From assembly GCA_964188305.1 (NCBI GenBank), contig OZ076889.1: a stretch of 64,000 nt of DNA; one strand, written 5' to 3'. A model generated the notes under the pieces. That model ran no database searches. It was not told the DNA's origin and saw only the letters and a program-made list of their open reading frames with translations. A program made the position numbers and the translations under genes. Shown here piece after piece: positions 23,161 through 35,358 of the stretch (positions within the stretch are counted from its first letter, which is position 1; each line of letters begins with the position of its first letter). Origin of the DNA: Podarcis bocagei (taxonomy: Eukaryota).

Positions 23161-23446
23161 TGAAATATGCTCAGAGTCGAGAGTGGATTTCATGCTCTTT
23201 ATTCAGCTCATAGTGGTGAGGAGGAATGAAAGTTCCCCCACAATATCTGCTTTATATACATTATTTACACAATGGGCTGCACGTGATTGGCTAATTCTGG
23301 GATTCTCCTGTAGGCCAATCAGGTTGTGGATTCACTTCCACCTGGAGCTGGATTGGGTGGCTCCTGCGGACCAATCATACTGCTGCATTGTTCGAGGACC
23401 AATCATACTGTTGCATTTTGGATCCTATGCAACTCAGTGCGTAACA
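23161..23446 (-). mobile_element. solo LTR (same family as 32456-32778)
   Basis: TG...CA termini, repeated CCAAT boxes, TATATAAAG and AATAAA on the minus strand; clear homology to 32456-32778. Confidence 0.8.
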
Positions 23447-24442
23447 GGGCAGGACCATAGCTCCTACCTGATCTTCACTGCGACAGCCTCACTCTGCTGT
23501 GGCGCTTCCACTTCCGGGGCACAGCGCCTCCCAAGCATCATCTGCTACTAGAGGCAGCTGTTCCACTCTTCCAACTGGTAGAGCCAGCCCTGGTGTCCAG
23601 CAGTCAAAAAGAGGCCATTTTAATCCCTACAATGGAAAGCCAGTTTCTGCCTCCCTCAACATATCTACATTTTACCAATGTCTTTATTCAACACAGAAGT
23701 AAACAAGACAGGTTCTGCTAGGAATTGGACAAATAAAAAGTATGACACACTGACCTATTTAGTATTTAAAGGGCTAAATTAGAATTCTGCTTAATTATCG
23801 TTTTTCAAAAATGTACCTGGGCTAATGTTATTTTTAATTTAATCTTTTTGTTGTTTAACCAGCCATTTGATAGCTGTTTTTTCATGAGCAGCTTTTCGGG
23901 GAGTGGCCGCAGCTGTAAGTGAATGGTGGGGCAGATTGTAGGTCTTTTCCATACACTCAGCATGCTTAAGACCCATGTAACCTGCATTGTTCACACACAG
24001 CACACATGGGACTGTATCAGAAGAGTGGCTGCCATTCAGCTCTGACTGCATGTGAAAGATATCTGAGTGTGACAAGTACATTGAGCCTCTCAAAAGCATA
24101 TTCTGGGTTGTCCTGTGGGTCTCTGACTATAGAGTGCATTGAGAAATCAAAAGCAATCAGCCCCTTATAATGGAAGCTCAGCTGCTGGGGGTGGGTGAGT
24201 ACAGTGAGCTGAACTCCAGTAGGTAGTCTATGGAAATGAGTTAGAATGCAACCCACAGCCTCATTATGTTAACTGCAAATTAACTTAACAGCTTTGTTTA
24301 AACCTCAGCTATTTCAAATAAAGGAAAGATGAACTAGGGGCTGTGTGACAAGTTTTTGAGAGTTGAGTTTCATAGGCAGCATATAATATACCAGCCTTCA
24401 TTATTCTGGTTCCCTCCAGGATCCTGGTGCATGTGAGATTAT

Positions 24443-24566
24443 TACAACCTTTGCCAACCCCCTCCAGATGTTTTGGACTACAATTTCCCCCAGTCCCAAC
24501 CAGCACTGACTGGGGCTGATGAGAGTTGTACTCCAAAACATCTGGAAGGTGTTGGCAAAGGCTGCA
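24443..24566. mobile_element. palindromic non-autonomous DNA element (MITE)
   Basis: CCTTTGCCAAC...TCCAGATGTTTTGGA ... TCCAAAACATCTGGA...GTTGGCAAAGG inverted arms. Confidence 0.75.
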
Positions 24567-24959
24567 GTATGGTCACATGCAGAATATGGATTGGACAAAG
24601 TGTACTCTGCCTACTGCTTACACGTAATCTAAAAGTATCAAAAGATCAGCAAGCCTATCCACACCCCAATACAGGAGAACCTTTGTGCAGTCCTCAACAG
24701 ATCAAGGGGTGCCCTCTGAGCAGGACCTTGGGGGCATGGCTCTACTTAGCAAAGCAAACACCCAAATTTACCAAGGCTGAGTTGATTAACTTTGAGGTAA
24801 GTGAAGTAATATTCATAAGCTGTTCCTCCTATGGCAATTAAGTCCAGAATTTAAAGCTACCTAGTTGTATGAGTGGGGGGAAACAGGCACAACGTAAAAG
24901 GCACCCAAATAGTGGATCAAGCTAGTCAGCCAAGTCATACAAGAAGCCTGTGTACCCTA

Positions 24960-25397
24960 CGTGTAGAACCTTACATTTGTCCCTTTTTAATTTCATTTTG
25001 TTAATTTGGGCTCAGTTCTCCATTCTGTTAAGGTCATACTGAACCCTGATTATATGTTCTGTGCCATTAGCTACCCCTCACAGTTTGGTGTCATGTGCAC
25101 ATTTGATGAGCATTCCCTCAATTCCTTCATCCAAGTCACTAATAAAGATGTTGAACAACAGGCCCAGGACGGAACCCTGCAGCACTCTACTTGCCACTTT
25201 TTTCTGTATGATGAGGAACCATTAATGAGCACTCTTTGGGTTTGGTCAGTCAACCAACTACAAATCCACCTAACAGGTTACCTTGTCCCATTTTACCAGC
25301 TTCTCCACAAGAATATCATGGAAGACTTTGTCAAAAGCCTTAATGAAATCAAGATACACTACATCCACAGCATTGCACTGATCCATCCAGCTTGTAA

Positions 25398-25400
<3 letters not shown>
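24960..25400 (-). mobile_element. decayed CR1 LINE fragment (left part; interrupted by microsatellite and PLE insertion)
   Basis: Minus strand shows CR1 RT remnants ([11 protein letters not shown]; degenerate FADDT as LIKCAHDT); resumes at ~31994. Confidence 0.8.

Positions 25401-25455
<55 letters not shown>
25400..25455. repeat. (TC)n(TA)n microsatellite, left flank of PLE insertion
   Basis: Seen directly. Confidence 0.95.
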
Positions 25456-25504
25456 GGTTTTGGTGTCTTCGGGTGTCTTCCCGTGTAAGAGTTGGGGTGT
25501 CTAG

Positions 25505-25542
25505 GCGACGTTTCGACGAGGTCTCACTCGTCATCTTCAGGC
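25505..25542 (-). ncRNA. minimal type I hammerhead ribozyme motif (3' pLTR, copy 1)
   Basis: Reverse complement of CUGAAGA-U-GACGAG-ugagac-CUCGUC-GAAA-CGUC. Confidence 0.75.
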
Positions 25543-28499
25543 TGGTGCTTTCGGCTTCTTGTTACTGGAACAGAGCAGGATCTCAGTGTTTGAGTTCCTA
25601 TAAATACTGTTGAGGGGGTGTGGTGTATAGCCTCCAACGTTCTGGGCAGAGAGGAAGTTCCCAGGTTAGTGTGTCTTTTCTTCTTTTGTTCATTAATTAC
25701 TTGAGGGATATCTTGAGTGATTTCTTGAGTGATATTCTGAGTACCACTTAGGAGGGTCATTAGGTGTGGATTAGTTGCTAAAGCTTTCGTGTCTTGACCT
25801 CTTGACCTTGTGAAGAGTTTTTTCTGAGAAGATGGCTGTACTGCACTTAGTTGTGCTCTGGCTTGGCTTCGTGTATAGGGGCGAGCTGTGGTTTTGTGCC
25901 CTGTGCCAGCCAGATCTGTGTAGGGATTGCAGGGGGGTGCAGCATCCGGAGGTGCCACTATGGTTTGGCTACTGGATGGTGTCTGTAATTTATCTGTGGA
26001 GAGGGTCTGGGTTTGGGTCTGGTGTGGTTGATTGGAGATGGCGTTCTGTGTGCCTCTGGTTCTGGTGTCGGTTTTTGTGGGGAGGGCTATTTTCCAGATG
26101 TCTGGCAGGCGGGACGTATCGTCACGCTTGTTCATGTTGTGAGGGTGTTTCTCTATCTCGATGGCTTCCATGATTATTCTCTTGTGGTGGTGTTCCATGT
26201 TAAAGAGCAATTTGGAATCTGAAAAATTAATTTCGTGTCCTGTTTCTTTCATGTGTTGGTAAAGAGAGGAAGTTTTTTCTTCTTTTTTGACGGCATTCTT
26301 GTGTTCTGCGATACGTGCATTTATTCGTCTGTTTGTTTGTCCAATGTACGTGGCTGGGCAGACTTTGCAGGGTATTTCATAGACCCCTTGGTTTTCTAAC
26401 TGGATTTTATCTTTGGGGTTTCTGAGGATATTGGCTATTTTTTGGTTGGTGCAAAAGGCTGTTTTGATATTGTGTTTATGGAGGATTTTGCTAATTTTAT
26501 CTGTAGTGCCCTTGATATAAGGAAGGAGGGCCATGCCATTGTTTTCTTCTGTGTCTTGCTTTTTGGGGGGTGTTTCTTTTTGGATTAGCTTCGTAACCCT
26601 GTTTTGCTGGTATCCGTTGGCGATTAACACATTTGAAAGATTCTGTAACTCAGTTGTCAAGTGGTCTTTGTCAGCCAGGCGTTTGGTTCTGGAGATGAGA
26701 GTCTTGGCTACGGAGTTTATTTGTGCAGGGTGGTGGTGTGATTGTGCATGTAAGTAGCGGTTGGTGTGTGTTTTTTTCCGGTAGATAGTGTGTCCTAGGG
26801 AGCCATCAGGTTTTTTGTAGATTAGGACGTCAAGGAAGGGAAGTTGGTTGTTGGCTTCTATTTCCATAGTGAATTGTATTTTGGGGTGTAGGCTGTTGAG
26901 ATGTGTGAGGAAGCTATCTAGTTTTTTCTTCCCGTGTGGCCAAATTACAAAGGTGTCGTCAACATACCTGAGCCAAAGTTTGGGTTTGTGTTCTGACTTG
27001 TCTAAAGCATTGGTTTCAAAGTGTTCCATGTACAGATTTGCGATGACCGGTGAGAGGGGTGATCCCATAGGTGCTCCTTCTATCTGTTTGTATCTTTGTC
27101 CATTGTGGATGAAGTACGTGTTGGTTAGGCAGTGGTTGGTCAGGTCCAGGATGTATTCGGGGGGATTGTATTTGTTTTGAATGGCTGTCAAGGCTTCATT
27201 AATGGGCACTTGTGTGAAGAGAGATACAACATCGAAGCTCACAAGTAGGTCGTCGGGATGTAGGTTTTGCTTCTTTATTGTTTCTATGAACTGGAAGGAG
27301 TTTGTAACGTGTGAAGCGATAGATTCTGCATAGGGCTGAAGTTGCTTAGCGAGAAATTTAGCGAGATTTTGTAGAGGTGAGCCTATGGAGCTGACTATTG
27401 GTCTGAGTGGTGTTCCTTCTTTGTGTATCTTGGGGAGACCGTAGAGTTTGGGGCATCTGGATGATTTTTCTCTGGGGATGATTCTTAGCTGGATTTCTTC
27501 ACTGATAGGAGAGGCTTTTATTTTGGATTTGGTGGTTTTTTCCAGATAGGTGGTGGGATCTGTTTTTATAGGTTGGTAGGTAGGGTCTTGGAGTAGATTT
27601 GATAGTTTTGCTTGGTAGTCCGATGTGTTCATCACAACAGTGGCATTACCTTTGTCTGCTGGGAGAATGATTATGTTGTTGTCTTTCCTCAGGTTGGTGA
27701 GTGCTTTCTGTTCTTCTTTGTGTAAATTGCTTCTGGGTGGTTTGCTGGAGCAGAGGATGTTGGTGACTTCAAGTCTGATTTTATTGGCTTCATCTGGGTT
27801 GATTTTGGTTAGGCTAGCTTCGACTCCGCATATGATGTTTTCCGTGGGGATGCGTCTCGGGGCGACTGCAAAGTTGAAACCTTTGGAGAGTACTTTGGTT
27901 TCAGTTGAGGTGAGGATCCTGTCTGATATGTTATGTACTGTTTGTTTCATGGGTTGTTGTGGAGGGTGGCTGGGCTTCTGGCGTTTCTCTAGTTTGTGGA
28001 GTTTGTTGGTGTGTGTGTCTGTCTTATGTGTGGACTCCGTTTCAGCTCTCCAAACGGCTAGTTGTTTGCATTTGTCCCAGAGTGCAGGGTGGATTTTGTT
28101 ACAAAGTTTGAGGTGAAGAGTGAGCAGATCTTTGTTGGTTTGGTTTAGTAGGTATCTTTTCTTATGTAGTTCGTTTCTGATTAGGGATAGTTCAGTTCGT
28201 TTCAGGATCCTTTCGGTAGCTGGGGTTTTAGAATGGAATTTAAGTTGGAAGCATGTGGGAATTAAGTTGTTGTCTCGGCAGTTGCGTAGGAACAAGAGAT
28301 CACATAAGATGGTGGCTCTTCGGATTTCTAGTTTCTCGTAGGTTCTTGTCAGCTGGAAGGTTTCCTCCCCGTAGAGGTGAGATATTTGCTTTCGTAGATT
28401 TTCACGGGTACAGGAATGCAGGTTTTGGTGTCTTCGGGTGTCTTCCCGTGTAAGAGTTGGGGTGTCTAGGCGACGTTTCGACGAGGTCTCACTCGTCAT
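25524..28499 (-). CDS. PLE polyprotein: reverse transcriptase + GIY-YIG endonuclease, 991 aa
   Basis: FLRNC..NNLIP N-terminal motif, PADKGN, LVSFDVVSLFT, GAPMGSPLSP, RYVDDTF, LPFLDV, GVYEIPCKVC..TYIGQT.R. Confidence 0.95.
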   Translation of the reverse strand: MTSETSSKRRLDTPTLTREDTRRHQNLHSCTRENLRKQISHLYGEETFQLTRTYEKLEIRRATILCDLLFLRNCRDNNLIPTCFQLKFHSKTPATERILKRTELSLIRNELHKKRYLLNQTNKDLLTLHLKLCNKIHPALWDKCKQLAVWRAETESTHKTDTHTNKLHKLEKRQKPSHPPQQPMKQTVHNISDRILTSTETKVLSKGFNFAVAPRRIPTENIICGVEASLTKINPDEANKIRLEVTNILCSSKPPRSNLHKEEQKALTNLRKDNNIIILPADKGNATVVMNTSDYQAKLSNLLQDPTYQPIKTDPTTYLEKTTKSKIKASPISEEIQLRIIPREKSSRCPKLYGLPKIHKEGTPLRPIVSSIGSPLQNLAKFLAKQLQPYAESIASHVTNSFQFIETIKKQNLHPDDLLVSFDVVSLFTQVPINEALTAIQNKYNPPEYILDLTNHCLTNTYFIHNGQRYKQIEGAPMGSPLSPVIANLYMEHFETNALDKSEHKPKLWLRYVDDTFVIWPHGKKKLDSFLTHLNSLHPKIQFTMEIEANNQLPFLDVLIYKKPDGSLGHTIYRKKTHTNRYLHAQSHHHPAQINSVAKTLISRTKRLADKDHLTTELQNLSNVLIANGYQQNRVTKLIQKETPPKKQDTEENNGMALLPYIKGTTDKISKILHKHNIKTAFCTNQKIANILRNPKDKIQLENQGVYEIPCKVCPATYIGQTNRRINARIAEHKNAVKKEEKTSSLYQHMKETGHEINFSDSKLLFNMEHHHKRIIMEAIEIEKHPHNMNKRDDTSRLPDIWKIALPTKTDTRTRGTQNAISNQPHQTQTQTLSTDKLQTPSSSQTIVAPPDAAPPCNPYTDLAGTGHKTTARPYTRSQARAQLSAVQPSSQKKLFTRSRGQDTKALATNPHLMTLLSGTQNITQEITQDIPQVINEQKKKRHTNLGTSSLPRTLEAIHHTPSTVFIGTQTLRSCSVPVTRSRKHQPEDDE

Positions 28500-28507
28500 C
28501 TTCAGGC
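28470..28507 (-). ncRNA. minimal type I hammerhead ribozyme motif (5' pLTR, copy 1)
   Basis: Same motif; overlaps the ORF start codon at 28499. Confidence 0.75.
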
Positions 28508-28704
28508 TGGTGCTTTCGGCTTCTTGTTACTGGAACAGAGCAGGATCTCAGTGTTTGAGTTCCTATAAATACTGTTGAGGGGGTGTGGTGTATAGCCTCC
28601 AACGTTCTGGGCAGAGAGGAAGTTCCCAGGTTAGTGTGTCTTTTCTTCTTTTGTTCATTAATTACTTGAGGGATATCTTGAGTGATTTCTTGAGTGATAT
28701 TCTG

Positions 28705-28775
28705 AGTACCACTTAGGAGGGTCATTAGGTGTGGATTAAACTCAGTACCACTTAGGAGGGTCATTAGGTGTGGAT
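28705..28775 (+). repeat. 32-bp direct duplication at the inversion junction
   Basis: AGTACCACTTAGGAGGGTCATTAGGTGTGGAT at 28705-28736 and 28744-28775. Confidence 0.9.
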
Positions 28776-28832
28776 AGGAACTCAAACACTGAGATCCTGC
28801 TCTGTTCCAGTAACAAGAAGCCGAAAGCACCA

Positions 28833-28870
28833 GCCTGAAGATGACGAGTGAGACCTCGTCGAAACGTCGC
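28833..28870 (+). ncRNA. minimal type I hammerhead ribozyme motif (5' pLTR, copy 2)
   Basis: CUGAAGA 28835-28841; 6-bp stem II GACGAG/CUCGUC; GAAA 28861-28864; palindromic ACGU in place of stem III; predicted GUC cleavage after 28868. Stem I is weak (GC/GC). Confidence 0.75.
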
Positions 28871-31816
28871 CTAGACACCCCAACTCTTACACGGGAAGAC
28901 ACCCGAAGACACCAAAACCTGCATTCCTGTACCCGTGAAAATCTACGAAAGCAAATATCTCACCTCTACGGGGAGGAAACCTTCCAGCTGACAAGAACCT
29001 ACGAGAAACTAGAAATCCGAAGAGCCACCATCTTATGTGATCTCTTGTTCCTACGCAACTGCCGAGACAACAACTTAATTCCCACATGCTTCCAACTTAA
29101 ATTCCATTCTAAAACCCCAGCTACCGAAAGGATCCTGAAACGAACTGAACTATCCCTAATCAGAAACGAACTACATAAGAAAAGATACCTACTAAACCAA
29201 ACCAACAAAGATCTGCTCACTCTTCACCTCAAACTTTGTAACAAAATCCACCCTGCACTCTGGGACAAATGCAAACAACTAGCCGTTTGGAGAGCTGAAA
29301 CGGAGTCCGCACATAAGACAGACACACACACCAACAAACTCCACAAACTAGAGAAACGCCAGAAGCCCAGCCACCCTCCACAACAACCCATGAAACAAAC
29401 AGTACATAACATATCAGACAGGATCCTCACCTCAACTGAAACCAAAGTACTCTCCAAAGGTTTCAACTTTGCAGTCGCCCCGAGACGCATCCCCACGGAA
29501 AACATCATATGCGGAGTCGAAGCTAGCCTAACCAAAATCAACCCAGATGAAGCCAATAAAATCAGACTTGAAGTCACCAACATCCTCTGCTCCAGCAAAC
29601 CACCCAGAAGCAATTTACACAAAGAAGAACAGAAAGCACTCACCAACCTGAGGAAAGACAACAACATAATCATTCTCCCAGCAGACAAAGGTAATGCCAC
29701 TGTTGTGATGAACACATCGGACTACCAAGCAAAACTATCAAATCTACTCCAAGACCCTACCTACCAACCTATAAAAACAGATCCCACCACCTATCTGGAA
29801 AAAACCACCAAATCCAAAATAAAAGCCTCTCCTATCAGTGAAGAAATCCAGCTAAGAATCATCCCCAGAGAAAAATCATCCAGATGCCCCAAACTCTACG
29901 GTCTCCCCAAGATACACAAAGAAGGAACACCACTCAGACCAATAGTCAGCTCCATAGGCTCACCTCTACAAAATCTCGCTAAATTTCTCGCTAAGCAACT
30001 TCAGCCCTATGCAGAATCTATCGCTTCACACGTTACAAACTCCTTCCAGTTCATAGAAACAATAAAGAAGCAAAACCTACATCCCGACGACCTACTTGTG
30101 AGCTTCGATGTTGTATCTCTCTTCACACAAGTGCCCATTAATGAAGCCTTGACAGCCATTCAAAACAAATACAATCCCCCCGAATACATCCTGGACCTGA
30201 CCAACCACTGCCTAACCAACACGTACTTCATCCACAATGGACAAAGATACAAACAGATAGAAGGAGCACCTATGGGATCACCCCTCTCACCGGTCATCGC
30301 AAATCTGTACATGGAACACTTTGAAACCAATGCTTTAGACAAGTCAGAACACAAACCCAAACTTTGGCTCAGGTATGTTGACGACACCTTTGTAATTTGG
30401 CCACACGGGAAGAAAAAACTAGATAGCTTCCTCACACATCTCAACAGCCTACACCCCAAAATACAATTCACTATGGAAATAGAAGCCAACAACCAACTTC
30501 CCTTCCTTGACGTCCTAATCTACAAAAAACCTGATGGCTCCCTAGGACACACTATCTACCGGAAAAAAACACACACCAACCGCTACTTACATGCACAATC
30601 ACACCACCACCCTGCACAAATAAACTCCGTAGCCAAGACTCTCATCTCCAGAACCAAACGCCTGGCTGACAAAGACCACTTGACAACTGAGTTACAGAAT
30701 CTTTCAAATGTGTTAATCGCCAATGGATACCAGCAAAACAGGGTTACGAAGCTAATCCAAAAAGAAACACCCCCCAAAAAGCAAGACACAGAAGAAAACA
30801 ATGGCATGGCCCTCCTTCCTTATATCAAGGGCACTACAGATAAAATTAGCAAAATCCTCCATAAACACAATATCAAAACAGCCTTTTGCACCAACCAAAA
30901 AATAGCCAATATCCTCAGAAACCCCAAAGATAAAATCCAGTTAGAAAACCAAGGGGTCTATGAAATACCCTGCAAAGTCTGCCCAGCCACGTACATTGGA
31001 CAAACAAACAGACGAATAAATGCACGTATCGCAGAACACAAGAATGCCGTCAAAAAAGAAGAAAAAACTTCCTCTCTTTACCAACACATGAAAGAAACAG
31101 GACACGAAATTAATTTTTCAGATTCCAAATTGCTCTTTAACATGGAACACCACCACAAGAGAATAATCATGGAAGCCATCGAGATAGAGAAACACCCTCA
31201 CAACATGAACAAGCGTGACGATACGTCCCGCCTGCCAGACATCTGGAAAATAGCCCTCCCCACAAAAACCGACACCAGAACCAGAGGCACACAGAACGCC
31301 ATCTCCAATCAACCACACCAGACCCAAACCCAGACCCTCTCCACAGATAAATTACAGACACCATCCAGTAGCCAAACCATAGTGGCACCTCCGGATGCTG
31401 CACCCCCCTGCAATCCCTACACAGATCTGGCTGGCACAGGGCACAAAACCACAGCTCGCCCCTATACACGAAGCCAAGCCAGAGCACAACTAAGTGCAGT
31501 ACAGCCATCTTCTCAGAAAAAACTCTTCACAAGGTCAAGAGGTCAAGACACGAAAGCTTTAGCAACTAATCCACACCTAATGACCCTCCTAAGTGGTACT
31601 CAGAATATCACTCAAGAAATCACTCAAGATATCCCTCAAGTAATTAATGAACAAAAGAAGAAAAGACACACTAACCTGGGAACTTCCTCTCTGCCCAGAA
31701 CGTTGGAGGCTATACACCACACCCCCTCAACAGTATTTATAGGAACTCAAACACTGAGATCCTGCTCTGTTCCAGTAACAAGAAGCCGAAAGCACCAGCC
31801 TGAAGATGACGAGTGA
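28841..31816 (+). CDS. PLE polyprotein: reverse transcriptase + GIY-YIG endonuclease, 991 aa
   Basis: Same motifs as copy 1; differs by one residue (ETESAHK versus ETESTHK). Confidence 0.95.
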   Translation: MTSETSSKRRLDTPTLTREDTRRHQNLHSCTRENLRKQISHLYGEETFQLTRTYEKLEIRRATILCDLLFLRNCRDNNLIPTCFQLKFHSKTPATERILKRTELSLIRNELHKKRYLLNQTNKDLLTLHLKLCNKIHPALWDKCKQLAVWRAETESAHKTDTHTNKLHKLEKRQKPSHPPQQPMKQTVHNISDRILTSTETKVLSKGFNFAVAPRRIPTENIICGVEASLTKINPDEANKIRLEVTNILCSSKPPRSNLHKEEQKALTNLRKDNNIIILPADKGNATVVMNTSDYQAKLSNLLQDPTYQPIKTDPTTYLEKTTKSKIKASPISEEIQLRIIPREKSSRCPKLYGLPKIHKEGTPLRPIVSSIGSPLQNLAKFLAKQLQPYAESIASHVTNSFQFIETIKKQNLHPDDLLVSFDVVSLFTQVPINEALTAIQNKYNPPEYILDLTNHCLTNTYFIHNGQRYKQIEGAPMGSPLSPVIANLYMEHFETNALDKSEHKPKLWLRYVDDTFVIWPHGKKKLDSFLTHLNSLHPKIQFTMEIEANNQLPFLDVLIYKKPDGSLGHTIYRKKTHTNRYLHAQSHHHPAQINSVAKTLISRTKRLADKDHLTTELQNLSNVLIANGYQQNRVTKLIQKETPPKKQDTEENNGMALLPYIKGTTDKISKILHKHNIKTAFCTNQKIANILRNPKDKIQLENQGVYEIPCKVCPATYIGQTNRRINARIAEHKNAVKKEEKTSSLYQHMKETGHEINFSDSKLLFNMEHHHKRIIMEAIEIEKHPHNMNKRDDTSRLPDIWKIALPTKTDTRTRGTQNAISNQPHQTQTQTLSTDKLQTPSSSQTIVAPPDAAPPCNPYTDLAGTGHKTTARPYTRSQARAQLSAVQPSSQKKLFTRSRGQDTKALATNPHLMTLLSGTQNITQEITQDIPQVINEQKKKRHTNLGTSSLPRTLEAIHHTPSTVFIGTQTLRSCSVPVTRSRKHQPEDDE

Positions 31817-31835
31817 GACCTCGTCGAAACGTCGC
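31798..31835 (+). ncRNA. minimal type I hammerhead ribozyme motif (3' pLTR, copy 2)
   Basis: Same motif; the ORF stop TGA (31814-31816) lies in loop II; predicted cleavage after 31833. Confidence 0.75.
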
Positions 31836-31916
31836 CTAGACACCCCAACTCTTACACGGGAAGACACCCGAAGACACCAAAACCTGCATTCCTGTACCCG
31901 TGAAAATCTACGAAAG

Positions 31917-31920
<4 letters not shown>

Positions 31921-31993
<73 letters not shown>
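31921..31993. repeat. (TA)n microsatellite, right flank of PLE insertion
   Basis: Seen directly. Confidence 0.95.
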
Positions 31994-31996
<3 letters not shown>

Positions 31997-32092
31997 TTAT
32001 CTAGCATAGCTTATTTTTGAGAAACCCATGGTGGGTCTTAATAATCACAGCATCCCTTTTCTAAATGCTCACAGACCAACTGTTTAATTAAC
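31994..32092 (-). mobile_element. CR1 fragment, continuation of 24960-25400
   Basis: GATTTATCTAGCATAGCTTATTTTTGAGAAACCCATG is the CR1 segment expected directly after ...CTTGTAACACT in this orientation. Confidence 0.7.
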
Positions 32093-32455
32093 TGTTATGT
32101 TGATATCAATTGTATCATTGTCACACATAAAATCCATGATTATGTTCTTTAAAATGTTGTAACTTACTGACAGACCTTTTTTGTGTAAAAATTGACCAAT
32201 AAGTTGTTGCTACTAAATAAAAAGCTGCTGACTTGTATGGGCAGTACTAAGCTAGATGGAACATTGGTCTTATAGCAGCTTCTTAAAATAATGACTTTTG
32301 TTTGCTGTTTCTCATTATGTCAATTACTCTGTGAATAACTTGCTCATTCTCCTGCCCCACAAAAGTAAGTGTCTCTATATGCAATTATTGGAGAGAGGGC
32401 ACCCAGATCTGACATCAGTTAATTGTGTGTGTGTGTGTGTGTGTGTTGGGGGGAG

Positions 32456-32778
32456 TGTTATGTACTGAGTTGAATAGGATCCAAAAGGCAGCAGTCTGAT
32501 TGGTCCTAGAACAATAGGGTCCATAATGCAGCAGTCTGATTGGTCCTAGAACAATGCAGCAGTATGATTGGTCCGCAGGAGCCACCCAATCCAGCTCCAG
32601 GCGGAAGTGAATCCACAACCTGATTGGCCTACAGGAGAATCCCAGAATTAGCCAATCACGTGCAGCCCATTGTGTAAATAATGTATATAAAGCAGATATT
32701 TTGGGGAAACTTTCATTCCTCACTACTATGAGCTGAATAAAGAGCATGAAATCCACACTCGACTCCAAGTATATTTCA
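32456..32778 (+). mobile_element. solo LTR (Gypsy-like)
   Basis: TGTTATG...TTTCA termini; repeated GATTGG units, TATATAAAG and AATAAA. Confidence 0.8.
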
Positions 32779-33816
32779 GGGGGACACACAAACGGACCTC
32801 TCTTCATACAGAGAGAGCCTTCTTTCCGTAATCAGCAGAGATAGATGCTTTGTAACCTTGGTAACACTGGCACAGTTTGTGTGCCAAAAAGGTGCTGCTG
32901 AATTCAAAATGTTTCACAAAAGATTTCAAGCATCAGAGCCAGTTACTGAAAGCACAATGAAACACAGTTTAACTTTTCTCCCACTAAATTGCTGGATGGG
33001 TTTCAGGAGAAAACGAAGCTTAATATGTATGGGAAAAGAAGAGTGATTGGTGTCTTAGAATAATCAAAATATGAAAAATAGATTCAGTTATGACAAAAAA
33101 AAAAAACAGCAACGGTCCATATAGAAAAGAACCTAAACAGCAGCCATGGCATGTCTTTTATTATGACCAACTGAAAGGCACAAAATACTGAGATACCTTT
33201 CTAGTTTCACAGAAGTCTTCCTCATACAGGATGTTAAAGAAGAGAAGGGTAGAAAAATAAACAGGGCCACCCTAATATGTTTTGCTGTGTGAAGCAAGAA
33301 GAAGATGGCTCTTAACTTTGGGAGTTTCTGATGGTCCTAGGAAAGGGATTGTGCCACTGCTACTCTTTAACTGTTTCCACCCTCGTCTTTGATAGTTAAG
33401 GCATTTTCATGTGACCCTCCTCTTCTGTTTCATTTAATCTATGCTGTGCCGCTTTCACTTGGAATTGTTTTACTTGTTTTTATAATTGTATATCAAATGT
33501 TTTACTTCTTTTATTGGTTTTGTTGTTGTTGTAACCCACCCTGCGACCTTACAGTGAAGAATGGGTCAAAACCCTAAAATACATAAAATGCACATGCTAA
33601 TGTTTGTGCTGTTACAGCCCGACCCATTGTGCATTATCATGTGAGTAAGCGCCACTAATTGAAGTAAGTGTGCATAAGACTGTACCATAAATGTAGAAAA
33701 TGCTTTCATTTTTTTATTTCCTAATAACCTTTTGAGATAGGGCATCAATATTCCAAGTTAACATTAGAATAAAGCTAGGAGATACTGAATTGACCCAGGT
33801 CATCCAATGAGTCTAA

Positions 33817-35222: not shown

Positions 35223-35358
35223 CAGGCATCCCCAACCTGCGGCCCTCCAGATGTTTTGGCCTACAACTCCCATGATCCCTAGCTAACAGGACCGATGGTC
35301 AGGGATGGTGGGAATTGTAGTCCAAAACATCTGGAGGGTCGAAGGTTGGGGATGCCTG
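35223..35358. mobile_element. hAT-type palindromic MITE
   Basis: TIR CAGGCATCCCCAACCT...AGGTTGGGGATGCCTG; 8-bp TSD ATCTAAAC/ATCTATAC. Confidence 0.85.

Follow-up and report, generated by a model that had tools for sequence, protein, structure and literature searches.

How does a mobile element come to lie in a genome as two nearly complete copies that meet head to head? The question is raised by a stretch of 64,000 nucleotides from Podarcis bocagei (NCBI GenBank assembly GCA_964188305.1, contig OZ076889.1; the whole stretch is called the window below), which holds an inverted pair of Penelope-like elements (PLEs). We think it likely that the pair comes from one insertion event, in which a young Poseidon-type PLE entered a (TA)n microsatellite inside an old long interspersed nuclear element (LINE) and was twin-primed, from both strands of the target. 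The coordinates of the features are collected in Table 1.

A repeat search of the window finds two arms of 3111 nt, 25456-28566 and 28774-31884, which are reverse complements of each other and lie on either side of a gap of 207 nt. A first-pass annotation of the same DNA had described the arms as near-identical, with one Thr/Ala difference and one silent difference, and this description holds: the repeat search together with a base-by-base comparison gives exactly two mismatches in 3111 nt, at the same coordinates. The first is A at 28031 against G at 29309, which makes codon 157 ACA (Thr) or GCA (Ala), and the second is C at 26616 against T at 30724, which is silent (codon 628, AAC/AAT). Both are transitions at CpG/TpG sites, one on each arm, and from this sequence context they are more suggestive of methyl-CpG decay at a later time, in two copies that are physically separate, than of errors in the reads. 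There is zero N in the window. GC and AT skew reverse their sign at the centre of the pair, as would be expected where two copies with an A-rich sense strand face each other.

The repeat unit is 2965 bp, according to the direct repeats at this spacing and to blastn of the unit against the window, and each arm is longer than one unit. A pseudo-long terminal repeat (pLTR) of 357 nt recurs at the 2965-bp spacing in both arms. The left copy is a canonical element with an open reading frame (ORF) between two pLTRs. The right copy is the same element, but the first 172 nt of its 5' pLTR are absent. The symmetric geometry that the annotation had proposed is thus right as regards the inversion of the arms and wrong as regards their extent, which is unequal at both ends. 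Its "207-bp spacer" (28567-28773) is no separate DNA either; it is element sequence, most of it the outer 172 nt of the left copy's 5' pLTR (28567-28738), followed by AA and by a direct re-copy of the preceding 35 nt with 1 mismatch (28741-28775). The last 2 nt of this re-copy (AT) double as the first 2 nt of the right copy, a 2-nt microhomology, and in the sequence of the centre join there is no (TA)n, nor any other target DNA, between the 5' ends of the two arms. Seen from the left complementary DNA (cDNA), it ends twice near the same unit position (~2794-2796), with AA between the two ends (28702-28775). Such a double end is the signature of run-off by the reverse transcriptase (RT) and a template jump, and this position, at the very beginning of the pLTR, may be where the element RNA has its 5' end; just upstream of it, no TATA-like motif was found.

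The annotation had also called the element Penelope-like and both its reading frames intact, and we come to the same result. On each strand 991 aa are open, with matches to RVT_1 and GIY-YIG in each, and the PLE-type RT, the C-terminal GIY-YIG, the pLTRs, the tail, the AT-rich or microsatellite target and the inverted copy all speak for the class. RVT_1 is found in each ORF with E 1.6e-15 (Pfam). The GIY-YIG match (aa 705-749) has 19.6 bits, which is below the Pfam gathering score of 22.6; the region, C-terminal to the RT, aligns with the endonuclease of Poseidon_Ac, here PAc (GVYxIPC...YIGxT...R..EH). The top relatives of the ORF carry RVT_1 plus the PLE-associated PF28514 and PF26215. The closest database protein is a gene model of Podarcis muralis (95% identity), and the nearest named relative by protein alignment is PAc; the ORF is collinear with the PAc/Poseidon proteins of Anolis carolinensis over aa 33-802 at 45% identity, with the RT motif RYVDDTF and the GIY-YIG motifs conserved. 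Judged by its sequence the element appears to be a young Poseidon-type PLE, the type being named after this nearest relative. Its ORF, at 2976 nt, is longer than the 2965-bp unit and reaches its stop codon in the downstream pLTR, 11 nt beyond the next AUG, so that completeness requires a downstream pLTR, which is present in both arms, and a full ORF is possible only on a tandem or circular template of more than unit length. The final 190 aa, which are not conserved, come from read-through of the pLTR. Look-ups of both exact proteins found no other contig and a search with the family-specific C-terminus gave a single P. muralis protein as the only match, which meant that the survey of the window's own family could not be extended to further copies.

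The outer ends of the pair differ from each other. We count 3'-end positions (+n) from the AUG of the ORF in the next, downstream unit. The left copy ends at +79 without a tail (...CACCAAAACC, then ATAT) and the right copy at +114 to +118 (...GCAAATAT, then ATAT; 4 nt are ambiguous with the (AT)n tract), and an extension of 35-39 nt, the tail, is found on the right arm and not on the left. Both outer junctions are element 3' ends, as had been stated in the first-pass annotation, but the two ends are not alike. They sit in contexts homologous to the +84 and +119 ends of PAc, where the end falls between AACC and TG in the one case and after A(C/T)AT in the other. In vitro, the PAc enzyme cleaves the two strands of AT-rich DNA and extends each of them, its reverse transcription starts internally at two sites with the tail as the stretch between them (~nt 85-119), and the protein is predicted to be a dimer (PMC11167929). 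By sequence comparison the tail at 31885-31923 corresponds to this stretch between the two RT start sites of PAc.

Outside the element ends there is a (TA)n/(AT)n tract on both sides, and beyond it old LINE sequence. Read on the minus strand, the right flank gives ...HHGFLKNKLC and the left flank VTSWMDQCNAVDVVYLDFIKAFDKV..., two pieces that are neighbouring motifs of a non-LTR reverse transcriptase, about 6 codons apart, with the microsatellites in place of those codons. We read this as a single insertion site in a microsatellite inside an old LINE. The nearest Atlas clusters of the left flank are RT fragments (score 0.95), and a PDB sequence search with it gave a weak match to the R2 RT motif (E 0.8). 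For the right flank the PDB sequence search was without any match, Pfam had none for the short flank pieces, and within the window no second copy of the flanking LINE, a possible empty site, was found.

Much of the argument comes from related loci in other lizards. In P. muralis a head-to-head pair of the window's own family (97% identity; locus L001) consists of 5'-truncated copies in (AT)n, whose arms, with 99.87% identity, begin at unit positions 807 and 797. The tail is present on one of them (+118) and missing from the other (+84). The centre join is a 5-nt microhomology, and on the tail-less arm there is a 5-nt loop in sense orientation, which rules out a fold-back at this locus. Ten PAc loci of A. 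carolinensis were reached through the annotated proteins of one cluster, and eight of them are head-to-head inverted complexes; the other two are simple pLTR-ORF-pLTR copies, one with its 3' end at +118 (L002) and one at +85 (L003). The outer ends of all eight complexes lie at +117 to +122 on one side and at +81 to +86 on the opposite side, and in all eight a single target-site duplication (TSD) of 8-13 bp frames the whole complex, which is direct evidence for a single event, with priming from the two 3' ends of a staggered cut. Their centre joins are a 2-nt microhomology or a short patchwork filler, resembling the stutter in the window. The divergence of arms within and between PAc loci was too low for telling one RNA from two.

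One of these complexes, L004 (A. carolinensis CM069367.1, 2816-11412), has three intact ORFs of 846 aa, a single one on the minus arm and a tandem pair on the plus arm, together with a 12-bp TSD (GAATATTGTTTT), a tail confined to the inverted arm and a 2-nt microhomology at the join. The first-pass annotation had regarded two complete coding copies as the extreme case; the window does belong to the long-arm end of the range, but with intact ORFs on both arms of L004 it is not unique. In another complex the centre filler of 15 nt (L007:5990-6004, GTGATCCTTTCATGG) appears to be put together from two stretches of the element close by, one of which is in inverted orientation; this would be serial template switching at the junction.

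Taken together, there are ten inverted complexes in three lizard genomes (the window, the P. muralis pair and eight PAc loci), and every one has exactly one tailed end. In eight of the ten it is the arm without a tail that extends further in the 5' direction. If start sites were chosen independently, the chance of this one-tail rule would be at most 0.5^10, or ~0.001.

We propose that events at the window locus ran as follows. The GIY-YIG endonuclease of the element would have cut both strands of the target, and each of the two DNA 3' ends would have primed reverse transcription of element RNA, the left arm from the inner site at +79 and hence without a tail, the right arm from the outer site at about +118 and hence with it. 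The two cDNAs would then have been extended towards each other. The left one would have gone 172 nt further, to the start of the pLTR, where AA was presumably added and the last 35 nt copied again; a re-copy after AA is what a jump at the end of the template would leave as its signature. The 3' end of the left cDNA would have paired through 2 nt (AT) with that of the right cDNA, and each would have served as template for the second strand of the other. The whole ORF is found on both arms because both cDNAs would have been nearly full length. The order of these steps we infer, as we do whether one RNA or two were copied. Twin target-primed reverse transcription had already been suggested in the first-pass annotation, and it is still the best fit, in view of the unequal arms, the PAc-homologous 3' ends, the lack of (TA)n at the centre and the single TSDs around the PAc complexes.

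Table 1. Features of the inverted PLE pair and its insertion site in the window.
Feature	Position	Strand	Basis
Decayed non-LTR (LINE) reverse-transcriptase remnant, left flank, VDVVYLDFIKAFDKV...	24901..25398	-	translation; Atlas; PDB sequence search
Left target microsatellite, (CT)16 then (TA)12.5	25400..25455	.	Tandem Repeats Finder; sequence reading
Left copy, 3283 nt, pLTR-ORF-pLTR: 172 nt of upstream partial unit + 2965-bp unit + 146 nt	25456..28738	-	blastn of unit; repeats
3' pLTR of left copy, 318 nt, without the 39-nt tail	25456..25773	-	derived from repeats/blastn; junction read
Intact 991-aa ORF, RT + GIY-YIG, Thr157 variant	25524..28499	-	ORF list; Pfam
Complete 357-nt 5' pLTR of left copy	28382..28738	-	reverse complement of 31567-31923
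Centre join: AA, then 35-nt re-copy of 28702-28736	28739..28775	.	direct repeat; sequence
Right copy, 3150 nt: unit + 185 nt	28774..31923	+	repeats; blastn
Hammerhead-like motif, CUGAAGA-U-(6-bp stem II)-GAAAC-GUC	28835..28868	+	motif search, PAc layout
Identical hammerhead-like copies	31800-31833 (+), 28472-28505 (-), 25507-25540 (-)		exact motif search
Intact 991-aa ORF, RT + GIY-YIG, Ala157 variant	28841..31816	+	ORF list; Pfam
Complete 357-nt 3' pLTR of right copy	31567..31923	+	inverted + direct repeats
Tail, 35-39 nt, right arm only	31885..31923	+	arm comparison; PMC11167929 for PAc counterpart
Right target microsatellite, (AT)37	31920..31993	.	Tandem Repeats Finder
Same LINE RT, part just upstream (HHGFLKNKLC), right flank	31994..32060	-	translation; recognised by motif only

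Other explanations have to be weighed against twin priming, and the first concerns the assembly. Long perfect palindromes are a known class of artefact, and PLE structures are known to trouble assemblies (PMC8557442), so that a fold-back or chimeric long read, or a mis-join, might have made a false palindrome from a single copy. An error of this kind would hardly be expected to end exactly at the element ends with the flanking DNA excluded, or to leave arms that are unequal at both ends. The two differences, being CpG-type transitions with one on each arm, are unlike random read errors, the window has no N gaps, and the same architecture recurs in independent assemblies of two other lizards. 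We give the artefact a small chance.

Self-priming, or snap-back, in which the 3' end of one cDNA folds back and the cDNA serves as its own template, the copy becoming the inverted arm, has been discussed for the Penelope of rotifers (PMC3846280), and centre junctions that are palindromic or show microhomology would suit it. A fold-back copy must however be a subset of its template. In the window each arm has sequence that is absent from the other, 172 + 35 nt on the left and the 39-nt tail on the right, and neither arm can for this reason be a fold-back copy of the other. The model is contradicted likewise in L001 and in seven of the eight PAc complexes; the geometry of L005, where the arm without a tail is a subset of the tailed arm, is compatible with it. 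Self-priming would also lead one to expect run-on into the flanking target DNA, which is not seen, and we regard it as very improbable.

It has been proposed that PLEs make use of antisense templates (PMC3846280), and one could imagine a continuous synthesis, where one cDNA copies the sense RNA and then jumps to an antisense element RNA, the 5' end of which becomes the far end of the complex. One end of each complex would then be fixed, and the one-tail rule could be explained. Against this, the single, non-inverted PAc copies use both 3' ends (+118 in L002 and +85 in L003), reverse transcription of sense RNA in vitro starts at both of these sites (PMC11167929), and priming at the two ends is indicated by the precise TSDs found there. 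We have little faith in this scenario.

Nor do we give much credence to two independent insertions, the second copy having entered what was left of the (TA)n, in opposite orientation and precisely where the earlier one has its 5' end. The (TA)n tracts are preferred targets and repeated hits in one tract are conceivable, but the TA repeat that should be left over between the arms is not there, and the arms differ at just 2 of 3111 nt. The same abutting geometry is moreover found at nine other loci, and one TSD surrounds the whole complex in 8/8 PAc cases. Least probable of all is an inverted duplication at the DNA level after a normal single insertion, for instance by replication fork switching or palindrome formation, which would account for the near-identity of the arms but whose breakpoints would have to match two different 3' ends, each at a known RT start site, with no flank duplicated.

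Several points weigh against twin priming in a single event, or at least make it less certain. No TSD can be read in the window, the target being a microsatellite, and the single event therefore rests here on the continuity of the flanks and on the analogy with PAc. The continuity of the flanks has weak tool support, PAc is only 45% identical in protein, and the ten PAc loci are a non-random sample. The structure of the window is as the assembly gives it. The P. muralis copies have T at the silent site, as in the right arm, which makes the direction of change uncertain, and it could be that two slightly different RNAs gave rise to the arms, instead of the arms having diverged after insertion; the Thr/Ala site is outside the coverage of the P. 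muralis copies. We consider twin priming at this locus to be supported, mainly by the geometry and by the analogy with PAc, but short of proof.

Going beyond the single locus, it is possible, if rather doubtful, that the two RT start sites are not alternatives and instead are two seats of a dimeric ribonucleoprotein (RNP) on one RNA, and that coupled priming makes the inverted repeat obligate. Each protomer would take one DNA 3' end, and the RT at the inner site would lead, with the RT at the outer site about 35 nt behind. A dimeric RNP of this kind would account for the one-tail rule (10/10) as well as for the longer 5' reach of the tail-less arm (8/10). In the PLE literature the tail is usually said to be at one end only, and PMC11167929, PMC8557442 and PMC3846280 draw no link from this to coupled start sites.

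The likeness to PAc (Poseidon_Ac; Arkhipova 2006; PMC11167929) goes further than the ends. [quoted passage not shown] The window's element is nevertheless a separate family, with an ORF of 991 aa against 836-847 aa in PAc, a 190-aa C-terminal extension through the pLTR that makes the ORF longer than the unit, a unit of 2965 bp against 2664 bp, 3' ends at +79/+118 against +84/+119, and an insertion in pure (TA)n, hence without a readable TSD.

The hammerhead-like motif (CUGAAGA-U-GACGAG...CUCGUC-GAAAC-GUC) has 4 exact matches against 0 expected, one per pLTR, and the AUG of the ORF is located at the start of its stem II. Stem II is present in both the minimum free energy and the centroid folds; stem I is not evident. 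Rfam found no hammerhead family in 24500-33000 (E<=1) nor in the pLTR alone (E<=10). By sequence comparison the motif and the hammerhead of PAc, whose activity has been seen in experiments, are placed alike with respect to the AUG, a correspondence that was read by eye, as MAFFT misaligned the region between the families. The catalytic core of the PAc hammerhead ends at the A of the AUG, with the cut site ~28 nt into the ORF (PMC11167929).

Compared with the canonical PLE architecture (Craig et al. 2021, PMC8557442; Arkhipova et al. 2013, PMC3846280), all the elements of the description are present in the window. PLE insertions are partial tandems with pLTRs, often with an inverted, 5'-truncated copy abutting the upstream pLTR, they have a tail of 30-40 bp at one end only, and microsatellites are frequent targets (PMC8557442; PMC3846280). 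Direct pLTRs, an inverted copy against the upstream pLTR, a tail at one end and a microsatellite target are what the window has too. In the usual account the inverted part is a short pLTR or a truncated piece, whereas the inverted copy in the window is truncated by only 172 nt of the pLTR and keeps the full ORF. The origin of the tandem and inverted structures of PLEs has been described as undefined (PMC8557442), and it is only of late that cleavage and extension of the two strands were demonstrated in vitro (PMC11167929).

How long the pair has been in place can be judged from its composition. The observed/expected ratio of CpG is 0.55 in the arm and 0.24 in the flanks, which is consistent with a young insertion, and two differences in 3.1 kb would as a rough inference mean an age of the order of 10^5 years. 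Gene conversion from arm to arm could make the pair look younger than it really is. It is plausible that the element family is currently active.

Another comparison is with the L1 element. In the twin priming that Ostertag and Kazazian reportedly described for it in 2001, both 3' ends of a staggered cut are said to prime reverse transcription, the cDNAs to be joined mid-way by microhomology and one TSD to frame the product. The second primer is there said to anneal internally on the same RNA, which gives an inversion without duplication. In the window, by contrast, the 3' start region is where both arms begin, and the outcome is an inverted duplicate of the whole element.

A few other repeats were seen around these loci. 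A repeat of ~270 bp, at 23161-23446 and 32456-32778, flanks the whole region in inverted orientation, ~9 kb apart and with 94% identity; the two are probably copies of an unrelated short interspersed repeat, and the one at 32456-32778 adjoins a 40-bp tandem duplication (32473-32555). At 24428-24581 there is an imperfect palindrome with 76-nt arms (78%), with a related copy 11 kb away at 35243-35339, which looks like a miniature inverted-repeat transposable element (MITE) or a hairpin repeat. Near one PAc copy of Anolis there are a 267-bp tandem array of 4 copies with 95-100% identity (L002:14972-16072) and a 26-bp minisatellite (L002:5288-5495).

The structure in the window is ordinary for the PLE class, at the long-arm end of the normal range, and unusual only in its nearly full-length inverted copy. 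The locus is nevertheless of value as a clean natural product of cutting and extension on both strands, young, with nearly full-length cDNAs and a readable join at the centre, and the two known start sites are divided between its arms, one on each. Together with the comparison loci it argues against self-priming and for coupled priming on both strands, and one tail per complex is a simple rule. A near-perfect palindrome of 3.1 kb with two intact ORFs is prone to mis-assembly or mis-annotation, and, going by its sequence, would be a likely source of hairpin RNA and of instability in the genome that carries it.

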